Below, one piece after another: positions 1,755 to 16,176 of a stretch of 64,000 nt of DNA. Below the pieces are notes generated by a model. That model was not told where the DNA came from. It did not search any database and saw nothing but the letters and a program-made list of their open reading frames with translations. The first letter of the stretch is position 1; each line of letters begins with the position of its first letter. The stretch comes from Carpediemonas membranifera BICM. Its lineage: Eukaryota > Protista > Fornicata. The translations under genes and the position numbers were made by a program. The stretch lies in NCBI GenBank assembly GCA_019828565.1, contig JAHDYR010000001.1, forward strand, positions 372,001-436,000. Reading direction: 5' to 3'.

Positions 1755-3704
1755 ATGGGGGATATTGGCAGGGTTTGGGGAACTCTGGGTTGGGGCAATC
1801 AGATAATGGAACCAACTGCGTCTCTGAATGCGCAGTGGGGCAAGATAAGCGAGCTGATCGGCAGCATTCAGCGCATTAAGGCTGATCTTGATGGGGAGAA
1901 CGCCAATGAGCCAGAGCTTGACGCTGTGATCAAGGACGGTGCGGTCTTCCTCGAGAAAAGTATCGCTCGCCTCCAAAACTTCGGTATATTGTCTAAGACA
2001 GCAAAAGAAGCTTACTTGATCTCTGTTTCGTCCATCATCAGCGATGGAATTCTCGCCCCCATCGCCAGTCTCCCCATTTCCAATCCACTGACTCGCCAAG
2101 CAGTCGGATACTCCCCCAAACACATCCAGGAGGCAGCTAGTGAGTGCCGCAGCGTCTGTAAGCAGCTTTCTATCCCAATCTCTGATCCCTCGACCCAGGT
2201 GTTCGCGTCTCCCATCGAGGCATTGGAATCTGTCCAGACTGCATTAGAATCGATCCGCACCAGCGCCGCTAGACTAGACAGCACGCTGGGAGAGTCGCTA
2301 GAGACTCTGCATGCTCGTATAACCTCGGCACTCCTCGCACTGAATGGCGAGGCCCCAGTCACGCTCAATTCAGATGCTCCTGAGCTTCCGGAGACATTAT
2401 ACACCCTGCTCCAGGGCACGTTGAGGACTATTCTAGTTGCTGCCCAAATGCCGGAATCCAACTGGTTTCTCTGCCGGAAATTTGCCTTTACCAAAATGGT
2501 GGTCGAGAAAGACGCTGAAACGGGTACTGTCGGGGCAGTTTCATTCGAACTATACCACGGAAGGGTGGCTATGAAGGGACCTAACGGCCATGGCCAGCTG
2601 GGAGACCCTGCTTCGCCAGCAGTAACAGGACCCGTCTGGGTTCGAGTCCCACCAGTCTCATCATTTTTTACTAATGGGTTGAGTTCGTTTGCTGCGACGT
2701 CTCGAGGAGTCTATAGTTGGGGCAGCAACACGAAAGGCCAGCTGGGGGTTGGGTCATCCGAACGTCTTGCAGCACCAAGAAGAGCAGTTTTCCCATCCGA
2801 CTTTGCCCAAGTCGAGCGGTCATCGGGTCACCATCGACTCCATCAATTTATTACTGAGGTGATGTTCTCGACGACAGCGAAGACTTGTCCTTCTTCATTC
2901 ATTCAAACTCAGTCTGGGTGGCTGGCTGCCGGTTGTAACAAGAACGGCGCCCTCGGAATAGGCTCAGATGCCCAGGTTGTGTCTACTTTCCAGCGAGTTC
3001 ACCTCCCGGCCGACTTTATTAGCGTTGACGCGGTCATTTTAGCCCGCGCCTCTTTCTGGTTGAAAGACGGTCAGTGCTATTGCTGCGGATACAACCAGGA
3101 CGGCAGCCTGGGCAATCGGACGAAGATCAACGCACACACACCCGCCCAGCTGACAGTGGGGGCGCATGACATTGATCACTTTACTGTTTACGGCCAGAGC
3201 TTTATCTTCCTCTCAGACGGCCGCTGTTGGCTCACTGGCCCTGACCGCGACGGCCTGGTCAACCATAATAATCTGTACACAAATACTTGGATATCGACTC
3301 GATCTTTGCGTGCGGCTGGATTGTCTCCGAATCTATTGAACTATGACCGGCTCCATCCGTCAAAGATTGCCATTGGCTACGAAAAGATTTTTATTCGTCT
3401 GACTGAACAATGGCTGGCCATCGGCGAGAACGACTTTGGCCAGCTTGGTACAGGAGAGTGCAACGCCCGCCTACAATCCTGGATGCCTGTCGCGCTCCCT
3501 CTGCATGTTGACATCGTGGACTTCTTCGATGGGGGTGATTCAGTCTGGTTTGTGACCACGGACGGTCTGTATGCGGCTGGATCAAACAGGTACCGTCGGC
3601 TGGGGCGTGAGGGGGCAGTGACGGTCTGCCCGGCCCCAGTGAAGGTTGAGGGGATTCCTCCGGGGATCAGGGCGTGTATTATGTACAGTTTAAGGCATGT
3701 TTGA
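1755..3704 (+). CDS. RCC1/BLIP-II repeat beta-propeller protein with helical N-terminus (start may be ATG 1806)
   Basis: Repeated VYSWGSNTKGQLG, AAGCNKNGALG, CCGYNQDGSLG, AIGENDFGQLG and AAGSNRYRRLG motifs. Confidence 0.85.
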   Translation: MGDIGRVWGTLGWGNQIMEPTASLNAQWGKISELIGSIQRIKADLDGENANEPELDAVIKDGAVFLEKSIARLQNFGILSKTAKEAYLISVSSIISDGILAPIASLPISNPLTRQAVGYSPKHIQEAASECRSVCKQLSIPISDPSTQVFASPIEALESVQTALESIRTSAARLDSTLGESLETLHARITSALLALNGEAPVTLNSDAPELPETLYTLLQGTLRTILVAAQMPESNWFLCRKFAFTKMVVEKDAETGTVGAVSFELYHGRVAMKGPNGHGQLGDPASPAVTGPVWVRVPPVSSFFTNGLSSFAATSRGVYSWGSNTKGQLGVGSSERLAAPRRAVFPSDFAQVERSSGHHRLHQFITEVMFSTTAKTCPSSFIQTQSGWLAAGCNKNGALGIGSDAQVVSTFQRVHLPADFISVDAVILARASFWLKDGQCYCCGYNQDGSLGNRTKINAHTPAQLTVGAHDIDHFTVYGQSFIFLSDGRCWLTGPDRDGLVNHNNLYTNTWISTRSLRAAGLSPNLLNYDRLHPSKIAIGYEKIFIRLTEQWLAIGENDFGQLGTGECNARLQSWMPVALPLHVDIVDFFDGGDSVWFVTTDGLYAAGSNRYRRLGREGAVTVCPAPVKVEGIPPGIRACIMYSLRHV

Positions 3705-5863: not shown

Positions 5864-5890
5864 ATACGCAGTTTAATTCTATATGTACAG

Positions 5891-7864
5891 CTAAACTATA
5901 GTCAACGCGATATCAACCACTTCAGGTCGAGTGAGCGGCGTTCTCTTGGTCAAACTCGACAAAAGCATGGCAATCGTCGGTCTATCAGCCGCTCTAGGGA
6001 GCAGACACGCCTTTACGACGCTGCTATACCAAGCGGGGGTGTCTTCCCGCAGCAAGCCGGTCAACTCAGCTCGACTCTGGGCGTGACTCAGAGCCTGGCC
6101 GTCGAGTCGACTCCACCCATGGTTTCCGGAAGCCAGCTCGATGAGAACTCCGGCAAATGAATAAATATCACTTGCCGGAGAAAAGTCAGAGTCGATGCAG
6201 TCATTTGGGTCATTTGGGATTTCCGGCGCGCTCCACACAGTGCCAGTTGCCGGATAAACACTCGCTCCTCGGTCTCCAGAAGTCAAACTGTGGAACTCAA
6301 AAGACCCGAGTCGAATTCCAGAGTTGGAACGAAGGAAGGAGCCCGGCTTGATGTTGCGGTGGACAACGCCAGCAGTGGCGACTGCTTGGAGACATGCGGC
6401 ACAATCTATGGCTATCGATTCGATCTCGGGCCAGGTGGGGCGGGTGCCGGGAGACTCGTATCGCATCCGAATCCAGGAATGGAGTGTTGGACAATCTGGA
6501 TCGATGGGATCGAGTATGACCGCTCCAAACTTCGGGCTGCTCATGTAACCCGTTGAGGCAATCGCGTGGGGTCCAGCAAGGAGCTTCAAACCAATCATTT
6601 CCCGCCGGACAAGGTACATTTGATCGGTTCGATCGGATGCGAGATACATCTTGACCGTTGAATCTCTCCCATTGACAACCGCTGTCGCGAGTGTGGAGGC
6701 GTCAGTGCGGCACAGAAGTCGTGTGGGAATTATTGAGTCGAATCTCAACGCGATATCACTAGATTTGGCCCCTCCTCTTGTCTGCTCGAGTGCTAGAGCG
6801 TCTAACGCAGCCAGCATCACGTGTTGGTCGAACTCACCTCCGCTGCTCCCGTTGTTCATCGGGCAGACGACGGACGTCGTTCTCTCAATCGTCCGAAGCA
6901 CAGTACTGATCACAGCGGCGTGCCTGTCAGCTCTGAGTGCTGGGATGAAGCCCATGCCGTCCTGCAGCATCGACTGGACATCGACGGTGGCCTCATCGAG
7001 GGTACGTATGACTCGCTGGACAGAGACGGTCTGCTCGCCAGTAAGGTTGGCTCTTGCCCGCACAGCGAGAAATGAGCACAGCTGGGCGAGTTTCCATGCC
7101 ATCTTCCCGACCTCCTCCTGGTTGAGCGTCGAAGGTCCCTGCCGGCTCGCGACCTGTCGATGGAGCTCGAGCAGGGCGGTGGCGGACTTGTAAACATCAG
7201 AAATAGCTGATACTCTGACCTGTGCAGCCTCTGTGATGATGTTCATGGCGAATACTAGGCTGCTGGCAGTTCTATAGGAGCTCGAAAGGGGCGTGGCGGT
7301 GGGCTGAGCGAATTGGATGAGGTTCGCGAGCTTCACGGGGGCTGTTTCTCTAGAGTATGGAGAGATAAGTGCATTCTGTGAGCTGGATGGCGTTTGGAAC
7401 GACGGTACGGCGGTACGGCGGCATGATCGAACAACAATCAATACAGCTGCCAGTGAAACGACTAAGACAAGGAGCAAGAGCGCAATGAGCAACACTGCAT
7501 TGAGTGTTGCTCCTACTATCACTGCCACAAGCGTTCCAACGGCAAGGAGGTCGGTCATCGTCGGACAAATATCCAACTGCACCCAGACTTCAGCCTCGTC
7601 TCCCAGGGCCAAGAAAGAGCTGCTTACACCGGAACTGGGACTGGGTGTCGCACTGAGTTGTGTAGACACATTATATATTGACTGGTCAACGACGGTCAAC
7701 CCAATGATGAATTGAGAGTCTAACACGACGATACCCGGACTGTATGGACGATGAACAGACCGTGAATAGCCGGGTGCAGCCACAATGGCAGAATAAAGCA
7801 GAGAGTGGCTGCAAAAATTTGATCGATTTGATTGATTCTCAAACATTTCCTTAGCTCTTCCCAC
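5891..7864 (-). CDS. Transmembrane MLKL-like protein: TM segment + four-helix bundle + TKL-type pseudokinase (start ATG 7846 or 7558)
   Basis: About 40-aa hydrophobic stretch ending RSCRR; helical block NQEEVGKMAWKLAQLCSFL...SVQRVIRTLDEA...ALRADRHAAVI; kinase fold with no Gly loop, STVK lysine, HRNIKPGSFL instead of HRD, GSFE instead of DFG, WSAPE, SDIYSF, DRP. Confidence 0.75.
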   Translation of the reverse strand: MGRAKEMFENQSNRSNFCSHSLLYSAIVAAPGYSRSVHRPYSPGIVVLDSQFIIGLTVVDQSIYNVSTQLSATPSPSSGVSSSFLALGDEAEVWVQLDICPTMTDLLAVGTLVAVIVGATLNAVLLIALLLLVLVVSLAAVLIVVRSCRRTAVPSFQTPSSSQNALISPYSRETAPVKLANLIQFAQPTATPLSSSYRTASSLVFAMNIITEAAQVRVSAISDVYKSATALLELHRQVASRQGPSTLNQEEVGKMAWKLAQLCSFLAVRARANLTGEQTVSVQRVIRTLDEATVDVQSMLQDGMGFIPALRADRHAAVISTVLRTIERTTSVVCPMNNGSSGGEFDQHVMLAALDALALEQTRGGAKSSDIALRFDSIIPTRLLCRTDASTLATAVVNGRDSTVKMYLASDRTDQMYLVRREMIGLKLLAGPHAIASTGYMSSPKFGAVILDPIDPDCPTLHSWIRMRYESPGTRPTWPEIESIAIDCAACLQAVATAGVVHRNIKPGSFLRSNSGIRLGSFEFHSLTSGDRGASVYPATGTVWSAPEIPNDPNDCIDSDFSPASDIYSFAGVLIELASGNHGWSRLDGQALSHAQSRAELTGLLREDTPAWYSSVVKACLLPRAADRPTIAMLLSSLTKRTPLTRPEVVDIALTIV

Positions 7865-7988
7865 AAAATATTAACGAGGGCAGCTGCCCTACTCAGAGGC
7901 TTCGGCACTGGCATACTGGGAGGTGGTCATAAGATACGCGAATCTGTTTTTCGGCTAGCCAGGATTTTTCTCCACAAAAGGACAACAC

Positions 7989-10541
7989 ATGAAAACTGCT
8001 CTCTGCCTCGTTGCTGTTCTCATTACTGCAGTGCTTTCAGAATATTTCACAACGTTTGAGGCATTTGACGCGGATTTGGATTCCTCTTTCGCCTCCTCTG
8101 TCTACATGACCGGCGACAAGCTCTATCTCGGTGCTCCTCGCCGAGACGATGCTCTTTCCAATGTTGGAGCAGTGTATGAGTATGTACTAGGATATGAACA
8201 ACCTCTTTCGACCGGTACCGTCATCACGCCGGTTGGTTCGACCGCCATAGCCAATGGATTCTTCGGTTCCTCCTTTGTTGGCCTCAAGAACGGCTTGGCG
8301 ATAAGCCATCCTGGCCTTGGAGACGGGTTTGTTCTCTATTATGATGATGAGGAGGGCACAGCGAAGAACTTTACTGGTGGTATGAACCCACTCGGTATTG
8401 CCGGCTTCGGCGCCTTCCTCGCTGCCTCTGATGATACCCTCGTGATCGGATCAAGCCCAGCCACCGACAAGGTAGTTGTCTGCCCCATGGATCCTGTCAC
8501 ATTCCAGCCCGCTGACACGTACCTCACTGTCACACTGCCTAGCGCCATCACAATATCATCCATCGCAATTTCAGACAGGTTCCTAGCCATAGCAGGCAGT
8601 AACACTGTCTACATGTACTCCCTCGACCGTACTGACGGCACTGTGAGCGGCACGACCCACCTCCACACCATCACGGGCCTTGGGTTGAGCATCAGCCTCG
8701 CTCTCAGCGATGAATACCTTGTGTACGGCGAGCCTTACCACTCTGGCGTCGCGCCTATGGCTGGCAAGATCTCCATCTCAGCCATTTCACCCTCTAGCAC
8801 GCTCGCGGACCCCCAGGTTATTCAGCACTACAACCCATACGCCAACTTCGGCAGCTCTGTCAGCATATACGATGACAGGGTCGCCGCAGGTTCTCCGAAT
8901 GCAACGGTGAGCTCCCAAGTAGCCGCGGGCACTGTCTATGTCTACAAAGAGACCACGACCTGGGGGATGGATCTCGAGATCTTCCCACCCTCACCCGTGA
9001 CCAACGGCAGAGTCGGTGACTTCGTCAGTATTACGTCCCGCGGCGTCCTGGCCGGCTCACCCACAGTTTCTTGGGGCACAGGCCTTGGCATGGTCTTCTC
9101 GCCGCAACCCAGCCCATCCTGCGACGCTGGGACCCACACCGACGGATGGACCAGCTGCGCCGACTGCGAGATAGGCACGGCCTCAGCGAAGAGCAATGCC
9201 CCTGCTTGTATGGTGTGCGATGCTGGACACTACCAGGATTCGACTGGGATGAATGCGTGTAGCAGCGCTGGCGTCGGTACTTATGTTCCCGACGACGACG
9301 TGCCTCATTCGACTGTCAAAAACTGCGGGGTGGGTACGTACAACAATGAGACAGCCGCCTCGGCATGCACAGCGGTGCCCGTTGGCTACGAGATCGTTGA
9401 CGGCCGCACAGCAATCCAGCCGTGCAGCGCAGGCAGCTACCAAGACACTACCGCCCAGGACAGCTGCAAGACCTGCGCCGCTGGCTATAGCACTGCCGAT
9501 GACGGCAAGCCTCACCTCCAATGTACCCGTTTTGTGCCACCCTCTATCTCTGTCGACACGCATACTTCTCCGGCTGCAGTGAGTGTGGATACAGGCGACT
9601 TGGCGACTTCAATCTCGACTGCAACTCTGGCTCTGCCGAATTCTGTCACTGCTTCTTGCAGTATCGTGGAAGATTCGATGGGTAATGATTATATCGTGCC
9701 GTTGATCCCGTTATCTGGTTCGACCGCAACAGTTGCCGCCGGAACTTACACCATGACCGTCACTCTTGCTGACTCTTCAACCGCCTCAATCAGTCTGACA
9801 TTTGATGAGACGCTATCGATTCCGAGACCAACCAACACACTCTCTGGCTCTACCCTCACTGGTACTGTCACTGCAGCTGCCTGCCCCGCGGCCATCATGT
9901 TCGGTTCGTACTCTTCTGCCCTGACTGCCGTGACTGTGTCCTCGTCGTCCGTGACTTGCAACTCGACGTTCACGCCCACTGCTGACCAGCTGGGCGATCA
10001 TTTGTCTCCTGCATCCACTGTCAGCGGTCGTACTCCAGATACGGCAAAGATTTGCGTATCTCTTGATTCTGTCAATATTGAGAGCACCGAGAGCTTCGCG
10101 ATGGTCATTGGCACGATCACTGCCACAAGTCTGACTACTTCCCTCGGCTCTCTCTGCGCCGACTTCTCGACCGTCTCGTCCAACGCCATCAGCACAGGTT
10201 CGACCAGTGCCGGCAAGCAGTACGCCTTGAGTGTGCTTTACAACGGCAACTCATGCCTCGACTCGACTGTCACAATCCCCCAAGTGACTGAGTCTGACAA
10301 TTCCGGTCTGATCGTCCAAGTCGTGCTCGCGGTGCTTGCCCTCCTTGTGGTAACAGCAGTCGCCCTAGTAGCCTGCTGTGTGGTCTGCGTCTTGCCCGTA
10401 ACTGGTCTGAGCGGTGTCGGTCTGGCCTTCCTCGGCTTCAAGAAGGGTAAGGATGGCGGACAGGACGACATGATCAACGGTAACGTCACCAGCAACCCCA
10501 TCCACGGGAACTACCTGCCTCAGGTGCCTGCATTCGTCTAA
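7989..10541 (+). CDS. Type I surface protein: signal peptide, FG-GAP (integrin-alpha-like) propeller repeats, Cys-rich GCC2/GCC3-type repeats, Ser/Thr-rich stalk, TM, short tail
   Basis: MKTALCLVAVLITAVLS signal; FASS..LYLGAP..GAVY and FGSSVS..VAAGSP..GTVYVY; CDAGTH/CDAGHYQ/CSAGSYQ repeats; hydrophobic C-terminal segment followed by KKGK. Confidence 0.85.
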   Translation: MKTALCLVAVLITAVLSEYFTTFEAFDADLDSSFASSVYMTGDKLYLGAPRRDDALSNVGAVYEYVLGYEQPLSTGTVITPVGSTAIANGFFGSSFVGLKNGLAISHPGLGDGFVLYYDDEEGTAKNFTGGMNPLGIAGFGAFLAASDDTLVIGSSPATDKVVVCPMDPVTFQPADTYLTVTLPSAITISSIAISDRFLAIAGSNTVYMYSLDRTDGTVSGTTHLHTITGLGLSISLALSDEYLVYGEPYHSGVAPMAGKISISAISPSSTLADPQVIQHYNPYANFGSSVSIYDDRVAAGSPNATVSSQVAAGTVYVYKETTTWGMDLEIFPPSPVTNGRVGDFVSITSRGVLAGSPTVSWGTGLGMVFSPQPSPSCDAGTHTDGWTSCADCEIGTASAKSNAPACMVCDAGHYQDSTGMNACSSAGVGTYVPDDDVPHSTVKNCGVGTYNNETAASACTAVPVGYEIVDGRTAIQPCSAGSYQDTTAQDSCKTCAAGYSTADDGKPHLQCTRFVPPSISVDTHTSPAAVSVDTGDLATSISTATLALPNSVTASCSIVEDSMGNDYIVPLIPLSGSTATVAAGTYTMTVTLADSSTASISLTFDETLSIPRPTNTLSGSTLTGTVTAAACPAAIMFGSYSSALTAVTVSSSSVTCNSTFTPTADQLGDHLSPASTVSGRTPDTAKICVSLDSVNIESTESFAMVIGTITATSLTTSLGSLCADFSTVSSNAISTGSTSAGKQYALSVLYNGNSCLDSTVTIPQVTESDNSGLIVQVVLAVLALLVVTAVALVACCVVCVLPVTGLSGVGLAFLGFKKGKDGGQDDMINGNVTSNPIHGNYLPQVPAFV

Positions 10542-14430: not shown

Positions 14431-16176
14431 ATGTCCAGCGCATATCAGGCCTGGACTGTGTATGATAGACGGACGAATAAGAACTCGACGGCAGAACAGC
14501 GAATGAGCATGCAGAACCGGTTGAACGCAGCGACGTATGATGCTAGAGCCTTTCTGACGTCATATTTCGAGCCAAGAAGCCGCCAGCATACTACACCAGT
14601 CGTTGAAGAAGCGCCTGCTACCTTTCCGCCCATCTCCACCGCTGTTCTGCCCGATGGTCTCCTCGTCCTCGATCTCTCCACCTCAAAACCAGGCAAGCGC
14701 AAGGCCCAAGCCCTCGCAGCTCCGTCGGCCACCCCACTGTGCCTCACCTCATCCGGATCCTTCGCTGTCGACACCATTGTCCCCCTGCTCACCAGAGCCG
14801 TGATTGTCCCAGACACGCAGGCCGTCCTCGCCGAATACAGCATAGCTACAACGCCCAGAAGATGGGTAGACCCCCTGCTGGCACACTGGATGCTCAACCC
14901 AGATGAAGGCGACATTAGCATCAATCAATTGATTAGCACCGGTTCGTATGAGGACTACACCAACCTCTGGGCAACTCTCAGCAAGTGCCTCGTCGATTAC
15001 GGACTCCAACGAAGGTTTCTATCCATCGAGATGCGTCTGGCCGCTGTCTGCGCTGACCTATCTCGCCCTATTCACCTCTCTCAGGGCGCCCTGAATGCTC
15101 ACAACGTCGCACTCACCGCTCAAATGAACCAATCAATTGAAGACTTCAAAATGAGTCACCCCGCCGCTATCCACGTCAATGTAGCCTCCCCTCAGCAGGT
15201 ATCGGCCCTACTTTACGGAACAATGGGTCTACCTCGACCGCAAGGGGTTGGTCGGACAAACACTGGCACTGACATCAAGTCACTTAGCACACTAGCTGAG
15301 CACCCGATAGTCGGTCATATCATATCATATCGCAAGGCAGCCAAGCTTTTATCGACTTATGTGACTCCATTTATCGGCGTTGACTCTGTCGCGACCGTAT
15401 GGGGCCAAACCCACACGGGCACAGGCCGCATGCAGTGCAGGGGTGGCTACCCCTTGCTCCAGACCCCCGCCGGCATCCGAAACTGCATTGTCCCAGATCC
15501 CAATTCCGGCAAAGTGTGGGTCGGTGCAGATTATTGTCAGATCGAGTGCGTCGTCGCTGCTCACATGTCGGCTGACACGGAGCTGAGCGAGATGCTTGGG
15601 GCGAGTGATGTCCACCGCGCCGTGGCTGCCCGAGTGTTCTCAGTGCCCGAGGGCGTAGTGACCGACGTACAGCGGGCCATAGCCAAACGTGCAGTTTATG
15701 CCTCAATTTATGGGATGTCGGCTGAGTCTCTGGCCGAGTCTCTCGCTCAATCTGGAGTGAGTGTGGCCGACTGTCACTCTGCGGTTGTCAAGATATCGGA
15801 GATATTCAGCGGTCTCGCGAGATGGAAGGCTGAGCTCGAGCGGCTCCCGACTGTGCAGACCCTGTTCGGTCGACCGCGACACATATCGTCCAGGCACGCG
15901 ACACGAGCGGTTAATAGTGTGGTCCAAGGGACCGCTGGCGATCTTCTTCGCATGTCTGCCGTTCGAGTGCACGAGAAACTGCGGCAAACGGCCTCTGGCC
16001 GCCTTGTAATGCTCCTACACGATGAAATCATCGTAGAGTGTTCAGAGGCCGAAGTGGTGTCTGTCGCTGCTATTCTTCGGCAGGCGATGACTGAGGGGTT
16101 TCCCATTGACCGGCTGAGAGTCAGCTGCAAGCTGTACCGACGGTCTTGGGGCGAAATGGAGGAAATTAACATGTAA
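14431..16176 (+). CDS. Family-A DNA polymerase, Pol theta/Pol nu-like, without helicase domain
   Basis: DPLLAHWMLNP (theta/nu pseudo-exonuclease-like), TGTGRMQC..PLLQ, motif A GADYCQIE, motif B RAIAKRAVYASIYG, AVNSVVQGTAGDL, motif C LLHDEIIVE. Confidence 0.9.
   Translation: MSSAYQAWTVYDRRTNKNSTAEQRMSMQNRLNAATYDARAFLTSYFEPRSRQHTTPVVEEAPATFPPISTAVLPDGLLVLDLSTSKPGKRKAQALAAPSATPLCLTSSGSFAVDTIVPLLTRAVIVPDTQAVLAEYSIATTPRRWVDPLLAHWMLNPDEGDISINQLISTGSYEDYTNLWATLSKCLVDYGLQRRFLSIEMRLAAVCADLSRPIHLSQGALNAHNVALTAQMNQSIEDFKMSHPAAIHVNVASPQQVSALLYGTMGLPRPQGVGRTNTGTDIKSLSTLAEHPIVGHIISYRKAAKLLSTYVTPFIGVDSVATVWGQTHTGTGRMQCRGGYPLLQTPAGIRNCIVPDPNSGKVWVGADYCQIECVVAAHMSADTELSEMLGASDVHRAVAARVFSVPEGVVTDVQRAIAKRAVYASIYGMSAESLAESLAQSGVSVADCHSAVVKISEIFSGLARWKAELERLPTVQTLFGRPRHISSRHATRAVNSVVQGTAGDLLRMSAVRVHEKLRQTASGRLVMLLHDEIIVECSEAEVVSVAAILRQAMTEGFPIDRLRVSCKLYRRSWGEMEEINM

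Follow-up and report, generated by a model that had tools for sequence, protein, structure and literature searches.

Does a unicellular eukaryote encode a membrane-anchored relative of the necroptosis effector MLKL? The question is raised by a reverse-strand gene in a 64,000-nucleotide stretch (the window) of contig JAHDYR010000001.1 of Carpediemonas membranifera, a free-living metamonad with a genome of 24.2 Mb in 69 contigs and 8300 proteins (PMC8516963). A preliminary description of the window had read its product, here designated P0001, as a transmembrane (TM) segment followed by a four-helix block and a pseudokinase, and this layout is supported by hydropathy, helix prediction and a Pfam Pkinase match. 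The MLKL-type bundle-kinase proteins described in animals, plants and fungi are soluble. Our literature search found no paper on P0001, and neither a TM-tethered form nor a receptor with the bundle between membrane and kinase. If the domain call is true, the module reaches Metamonada in one more independent bundle-kinase fusion, and P0001 would provide a test of the older role of the bundle, membrane attack versus signalling control.

The gene and the membrane anchor

The frame 7864-5891 on the reverse strand is open and real, and every peptide quoted in the preliminary description was recovered in it. The start, placed earlier at GTG 7864, is most likely ATG 7558, giving a protein of 555 aa, because the database protein begins at this codon and because, in two runs, RNA-type contigs (presumed by guess to be RNA) end at 7527-7530. 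These contigs cover 5871-7530 without joints, indicating that the gene is unspliced, and leave 7531-7991 uncovered. Upstream of ATG 7558 the frame stays open for 102 more codons, to 7864, with codon scores intermediate between those of coding and non-coding sequence, and a search of these codons for ectodomain homology gave no match; a longer form of P0001 reaching into them is possible. The paralogue count suggested earlier showed that the gene is single-copy in the genome (24,237,836 bases in 69 contigs searched). The features of the locus are listed in Table 1.

Table 1. Features of the P0001 locus and the related receptor kinase gene L033; positions are those of the window unless a contig is given.
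Feature	Position	Strand	Evidence
Gene for the TM, helical bundle and pseudokinase protein P0001 (555 aa)	5891..7558	-	Frame, database protein
Hydrophobic signal-anchor, 40 residues (aa 4-44), small-xxx-small motifs within it and basic RSCRR after it	7427..7549	-	Hydropathy
Ser/Pro/Thr-rich linker, aa 49-93	7280..7414	-	Sequence; coil for the most part in model
H0, additional amphipathic helix before the bundle, aa 94-111	7226..7279	-	Structure models
Four-helix block, aa 116-231, probably MLKL_N-type	6866..7213	-	ESM, alignment, model, threading
Brace-like helix joining bundle to kinase, aa 245-261	6776..6826	-	Structure models
TKL-like pseudokinase, aa ~272-541	5936..6745	-	Pfam, PDB sequence matches, motif survey
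430-bp gap separating divergent start codons	7559..7988	.	Coordinates; 7531-7991 without RNA-type contigs
Neighbour, 850 aa, head-to-head with the P0001 gene	7989..10541	+	Pfam, BLASTP, RNA-type contig
L033, 1745-aa one-piece receptor kinase	G000:C68:333382-338619 (L033:1883-7120)	-	Genome search with kinase

By the positive-inside rule, the basic residues after the anchor suggest that the C-terminal part of P0001 is cytosolic. The anchor helix was predicted with an AF2 pLDDT of 82-94 in a full-length model; the full-length single-sequence model of P0001 was set aside as useless. About 115 residues lie ahead of helix 1 of the predicted bundle, and between the bundle and the kinase domain the structure models place a helix that may correspond to a brace.

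The pseudokinase domain

The kinase domain of P0001 (Pfam Pkinase, E 9e-10) retains the beta-3 Lys (K303), the alphaC Glu (E320), the APE motif and the sequence SDIYSF. The Gly-loop position carries no Gly, both the catalytic Asp and the catalytic-loop Asn are missing from HRNIKPGS (HRN at 6361-6353), and SFE replaces DFG (6304-6296), with loss of the Asp and the Gly. The earlier motif readings, namely a Gly-less loop, a kept beta-3 Lys and the HRN and xFE substitutions, were all correct, and judged by these motifs the domain is a pseudokinase under the standard definition. By analogy with MLKL, in which ATP binding is cation-independent (PMC4718504), P0001 could bind ATP only without cations.

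The further argument that HRN and xFE point to MLKL did not hold. In a motif survey of 383 fetched kinase domains, a sample biased to look-alikes of P0001, 44 lacked the catalytic Asp; Asn took its place in 31 of these 44, and a non-Asp residue before FE occurred in seven. Both substitutions are recurrent in unrelated pseudokinases and therefore not diagnostic of MLKL. The HRNIK sequence is also present in two CK1-like genes of the genome, L003 (G000:C57:47397-47771) and L006 (G000:C8:807895-808260), whose products have HRN but an intact DFG and are probable pseudokinases.

The best solved relatives of the domain are RAF kinases (~1e-6), and the TKL assignment is based on these RAF-type PDB matches, not on a tree; MLKL is absent from the best 60 PDB sequence matches listed (RAF, PAK, PknA, CTR1). 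In the kinase phylogeny proposed as a check, P0001 formed an unplaceable long branch of 2.8-4.5 changes per site. The trees were built without animal and seed-plant MLKL sequences, and with two bacterial copies containing internal stops (L085 and L096) left out. An AU test did not reject the grouping of P0001 with bacterial MLKL_N-kinases (p 0.46) or with the kinase of the receptor L033 of the same genome (p 0.32), so that common descent of the P0001 and L033 domains is neither shown nor rejected by this test.

Bacterial MLKL_N + TKL kinase genes are found intact in MAGs (L066, L070-L098; Francisellaceae, Pseudomonadota and Myxococcales records), in eight of the 41 genomes of one order, with at most five copies each, and in three of the 86 of another. 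Their kinase domains form one clade, one of the proteins (P0192) adds Sel1, and as a group they resemble the eukaryote-type proteins that host-associated bacteria carry. Three intron-less genes on gene-poor metagenome contigs, encoding P0222, P0225 and P0234 (L068, L069, L100), combine MLKL_N with a tandem pseudokinase/kinase, the first domain of which carries HGELK; they are probably of plant origin.

The helical block and MLKL_N

The block delimited previously at 7246-6870 corresponds to residues 105-230. A single-sequence AlphaFold model (pLDDT 42) places helices at 94-111, 116-138, 147-171, 177-199, 212-231 and 245-261, with a short helix at 204-209 between helices 3 and 4; the layout of MLKL in PMC9815663 likewise has four long helices, the third and fourth separated by a short one, and a flanking helix at each end. 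The AlphaFold and Foldseek check proposed earlier returned a four-helix bundle (aa 111-232), but a generic one without an MLKL match. The low-confidence model (pLDDT 42) was closest to a designed binder (Z 10.6) and FliS (Z 8.5-8.9) and, in Foldseek, to a FAT domain (E 0.35). Fold searches gave no MLKL match for either model of P0001; the search with the Atlas model returned unrelated bundles. Since the models are of low confidence (pLDDT 42), the missing match says little. The bundle is net basic, with 14 K/R versus 11 D/E.

The MLKL identity assigned to the block is likely, though not proven: it is favoured by the nearest neighbours in an ESM feature search, while Pfam, hhalign and fold searches failed to detect it; we consider homology to MLKL_N probable. 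With matches admitted up to E 1, neither MLKL_N (PF22215) nor MCAfunc (PF19584) was detected in full-length P0001, in the block or across the genome, and PDB sequence searches with the block gave no match. The seed profile of our MLKL_N reference set matched the MLKL structures of mouse and human at 1e-9. On our own profile HMM, the block scored 0.8-1.2 bits, a value equalled by 4% of shuffles and 7% of real windows, versus 22-91 bits for held-out true members; the glocal z was 1.6 and the hhalign probability 0.15%, with a mostly bacterial profile of the 27-member reference set, which was taken from fetched proteins. A kinase alphaI helix reached 7-10 bits on the MLKL_N profile by chance. The matches of the Trichomonad-like P0017 to this profile proved to be kinase alphaI helices and were rejected, as was L032, a weak MCAfunc match in the C. 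membranifera genome that is a phosphodiesterase-like protein.

In the ESM search, the MLKL_N and MCAfunc clusters were nearest to the block, with 164-178 features in common and all of the best ten family matches in one clan; the score of 0.87 falls below the line of 0.9 set by the tool and constitutes a lead only. Loop-tolerant helix-block threading, with block limits fixed after the alignments had been seen, gave a z of 4.7, above 99.8% of 2353 real-protein windows and reached by none of 400 shuffles. The reversed block threaded nearly as high (19.8 versus 21.6 forward), and much of this signal is therefore helix periodicity. The best pairwise match of the block to a single MLKL_N member lay above 99.9% of real windows. 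MAFFT placed Asn146 on the invariant Asn of the 27-member set at the cost of a 7-residue insertion; this Asn belongs to the NKxQC motif at the start of helix 2, the Cys of which is missing in P0001, and helix 3 could be aligned in two competing registers. Searches for homologues of the block, which covered proteins between 0.55 and 1.75 times as long as the query, retrieved the block itself as sole match, a search of 1.84 billion representatives gave, among the matches listed, down to E 4e-7, the kinase region only, and scans of viral contigs found nothing.

The head-to-head neighbour, L033 and possible functions

The neighbour comprises a signal peptide, FG-GAP repeats, Cys-rich ephrin-receptor-like repeats, an Ig-like part and a long TM segment, and ends in a tail of ~33 aa without a signalling domain. 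Its RNA-type contig begins at 7992, three bases past its ATG, and the gap between the two genes is possibly a shared promoter region. It is homologous to the ectodomain of L033 (BLASTP E 9e-17 and 2e-9), in which a signal peptide and an FG-GAP/Cys-rich ectodomain are followed by a ~40-aa TM segment, a linker, a helical block (aa ~1146-1280) and a TKL kinase that is catalytically intact by its motifs (GGFG, HRD, DFG). The block of L033 gave no Pfam MLKL_N or MCAfunc match. On our profile it scored 9.5-9.9 bits (0 of 2000 shuffles, 0.2% of real windows), it threaded at z 6.8 with a negative reversed control, its ESM score for MLKL_N was 0.91 with a low recognition value, and it carries NKRQ, a clearer form of the NKxQC motif. 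Judged by these comparisons, it is a better-supported MLKL_N candidate than the block of P0001. The two blocks gave no significant alignment to each other, so descent of P0001 from an L033-like gene is a matter of inference. The L033 kinase groups with the TKL expansion of its own genome (SH-aLRT 94-95), apart from bacterial and moss-like MLKL_N-kinases, which fits the repeated independent origin of MLKL_N-kinase fusions (PMC11297308).

Together, the neighbour and P0001 comprise the parts of L033 and look like a split copy of an L033-type receptor kinase. Ectodomains of the FG-GAP/Cys-rich/Ig-like family are encoded at no fewer than 38 loci among 8300 genes, and such a neighbour would be met by chance in roughly 0.5-3% of cases, the pairing having been judged after the fact. 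Frames of this family extend up to ~5200 aa; some members (L005, L007, L018) carry TKL kinases, and others apparently have none.

The reading that we favour, at a probability of about 0.45, is that P0001 makes up the intracellular part of a split surface receptor and acts as a switch or scaffold. It would hold at the membrane a far-diverged bundle of MLKL_N type together with a catalytically dead kinase of TKL type and, since it lacks an ectodomain, would depend on a partner for its switching. This partner, the tail-less neighbour receptor and/or L033, would sense an outside ligand and either cluster P0001 via the TM helices or phosphorylate it, as the L033 kinase could. The pseudokinase may serve as a conformational latch, setting the bundle free or changing its arrangement, and the bundle may mediate oligomerisation or auto-inhibition. 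The sequences show the anatomy of P0001, its lost catalytic residues, the homology of the ectodomains and the arrangement of the genes, and make the MLKL_N identity probable; topology, partnership, phosphorylation and output are what we infer from them. Plants pair a tail-less ectodomain protein, the receptor-like protein, with a SOBIR1/BIR-type co-receptor, a TM kinase or pseudokinase with little ectodomain. These pairs differ in having LRR ectodomains and no MLKL-type bundle, and the likeness is one of analogy only.

P0001 is outside the MLKL family as defined, since it is not soluble, its bundle is not N-terminal and it misses the Pfam cut-off. It shares with vertebrate MLKL (PDB 4BTF, 2MSV, 6LK5) a helical bundle, a brace-like helix and a pseudokinase with the beta-3 Lys kept, the Gly loop, HRD and DFG altered and, as in the mouse protein, the catalytic Asp changed to Asn. 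Vertebrate MLKL is, however, soluble and begins with the bundle, whereas in P0001 the TM anchor, linker and extra helix come first, and the sequences give no sign of orthology. The plant MLKLs (AtMLKL1-3) and the grass MLKL_NTD-kinases (Pm13, R3AK) are likewise bundle-kinase fusions, repeatedly independent, but have no TM anchor, and they work with NLRs or TIR signalling where P0001 would have a surface receptor; the kinase of Pm13, unlike that of P0001, is active. L033 shares with P0001 the long TM, the linker, the MLKL_N-like block and the TKL kinase, and differs in being one piece, with its own signal peptide and ectodomain and intact kinase motifs. An extra helix before an MLKL-type core is known from Basidiomycete MLKL-like and Goodbye-like NLR N-termini (PMC9815663); these are NACHT/NLR fusions without TM or kinase, and the likeness of the helix is by position.

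P0001 could alternatively be a tethered MLKL-like executioner. Once activated, its pseudokinase would free the bundle to form oligomers and make the membrane permeable, leading to ion flux or death, and the neighbour would be the sensor. The order of bundle, brace-like helix and pseudokinase is that of MLKL, K303 is kept while both metal ligands are lost, as in the cation-independent protein (PMC4718504), the bundle is basic, and the 50-aa linker would be long enough for it to touch the membrane; head-to-head pairs of sensor and MLKL are also known, as in wheat R3NLR/R3AK (10.64898/2026.08.07.743466). Killing by R3AK, however, depends on its N-terminal helix 1 (10.64898/2026.08.07.743466), and in P0001 the corresponding helix is preceded by ~115 residues; N-terminal extensions cast doubt on killing in the fungal relatives as well (PMC9815663). 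Moreover, the bundle of Pm13 restrains its kinase and does not kill (PMC11297308), and this reading requires the MLKL_N identity, itself unproven. We regard it as unlikely. Still less probable is its extension to a surface-receptor-coupled MLKL system formed by L033 and the split pair, in which the bundle would open the membrane on ligand binding, a necroptosis-like, independently assembled device in a metamonad.

It is rather doubtful that P0001 is an ordinary lineage-specific TM pseudokinase with an unrelated amphipathic four-helix bundle, a scaffold of the FAT, talin or FliS kind, beside a chance neighbour. The uniformly negative standard profile tests, the generic bundles among the top fold matches, the high reversed threading control, the ESM score under 0.9 and the chance scores of the alphaI helix all fit such a protein. 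The missing MLKL match nevertheless carries little weight with models of pLDDT 42, and the invariant Asn, the short helix that separates helix 3 from helix 4, and the ESM neighbours favour MLKL_N, as does the presence of a TM-MLKL_N-kinase receptor, L033, in the same genome. The extreme length of the kinase branch (2.8-4.5 changes per site), the weak codon bias of the kinase-coding region and the lack of detected relatives could also mean that a receptor kinase gene broke and left P0001 as a decaying, functionless remnant. This is highly improbable given the intact frame of 555 codons, the RNA-type contigs and the conservation of K303, E320, APE and SDIYSF; the divergent orientation of the two genes is also unlike the outcome of a simple break.

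Ankyrin + TKL kinase genes (L011-L025, L037-L063) form a large near-identical expansion, with many members on contig C5; some have WD40 or small-GTPase N-termini and several are apparently fragmented. Elsewhere in the window, the forward strand encodes an RCC1-repeat protein with a helical N-terminal region of ~230 aa without annotation (1755-3704) and a stand-alone family A DNA polymerase of 581 aa (14431-16176; Pfam E 1e-61).
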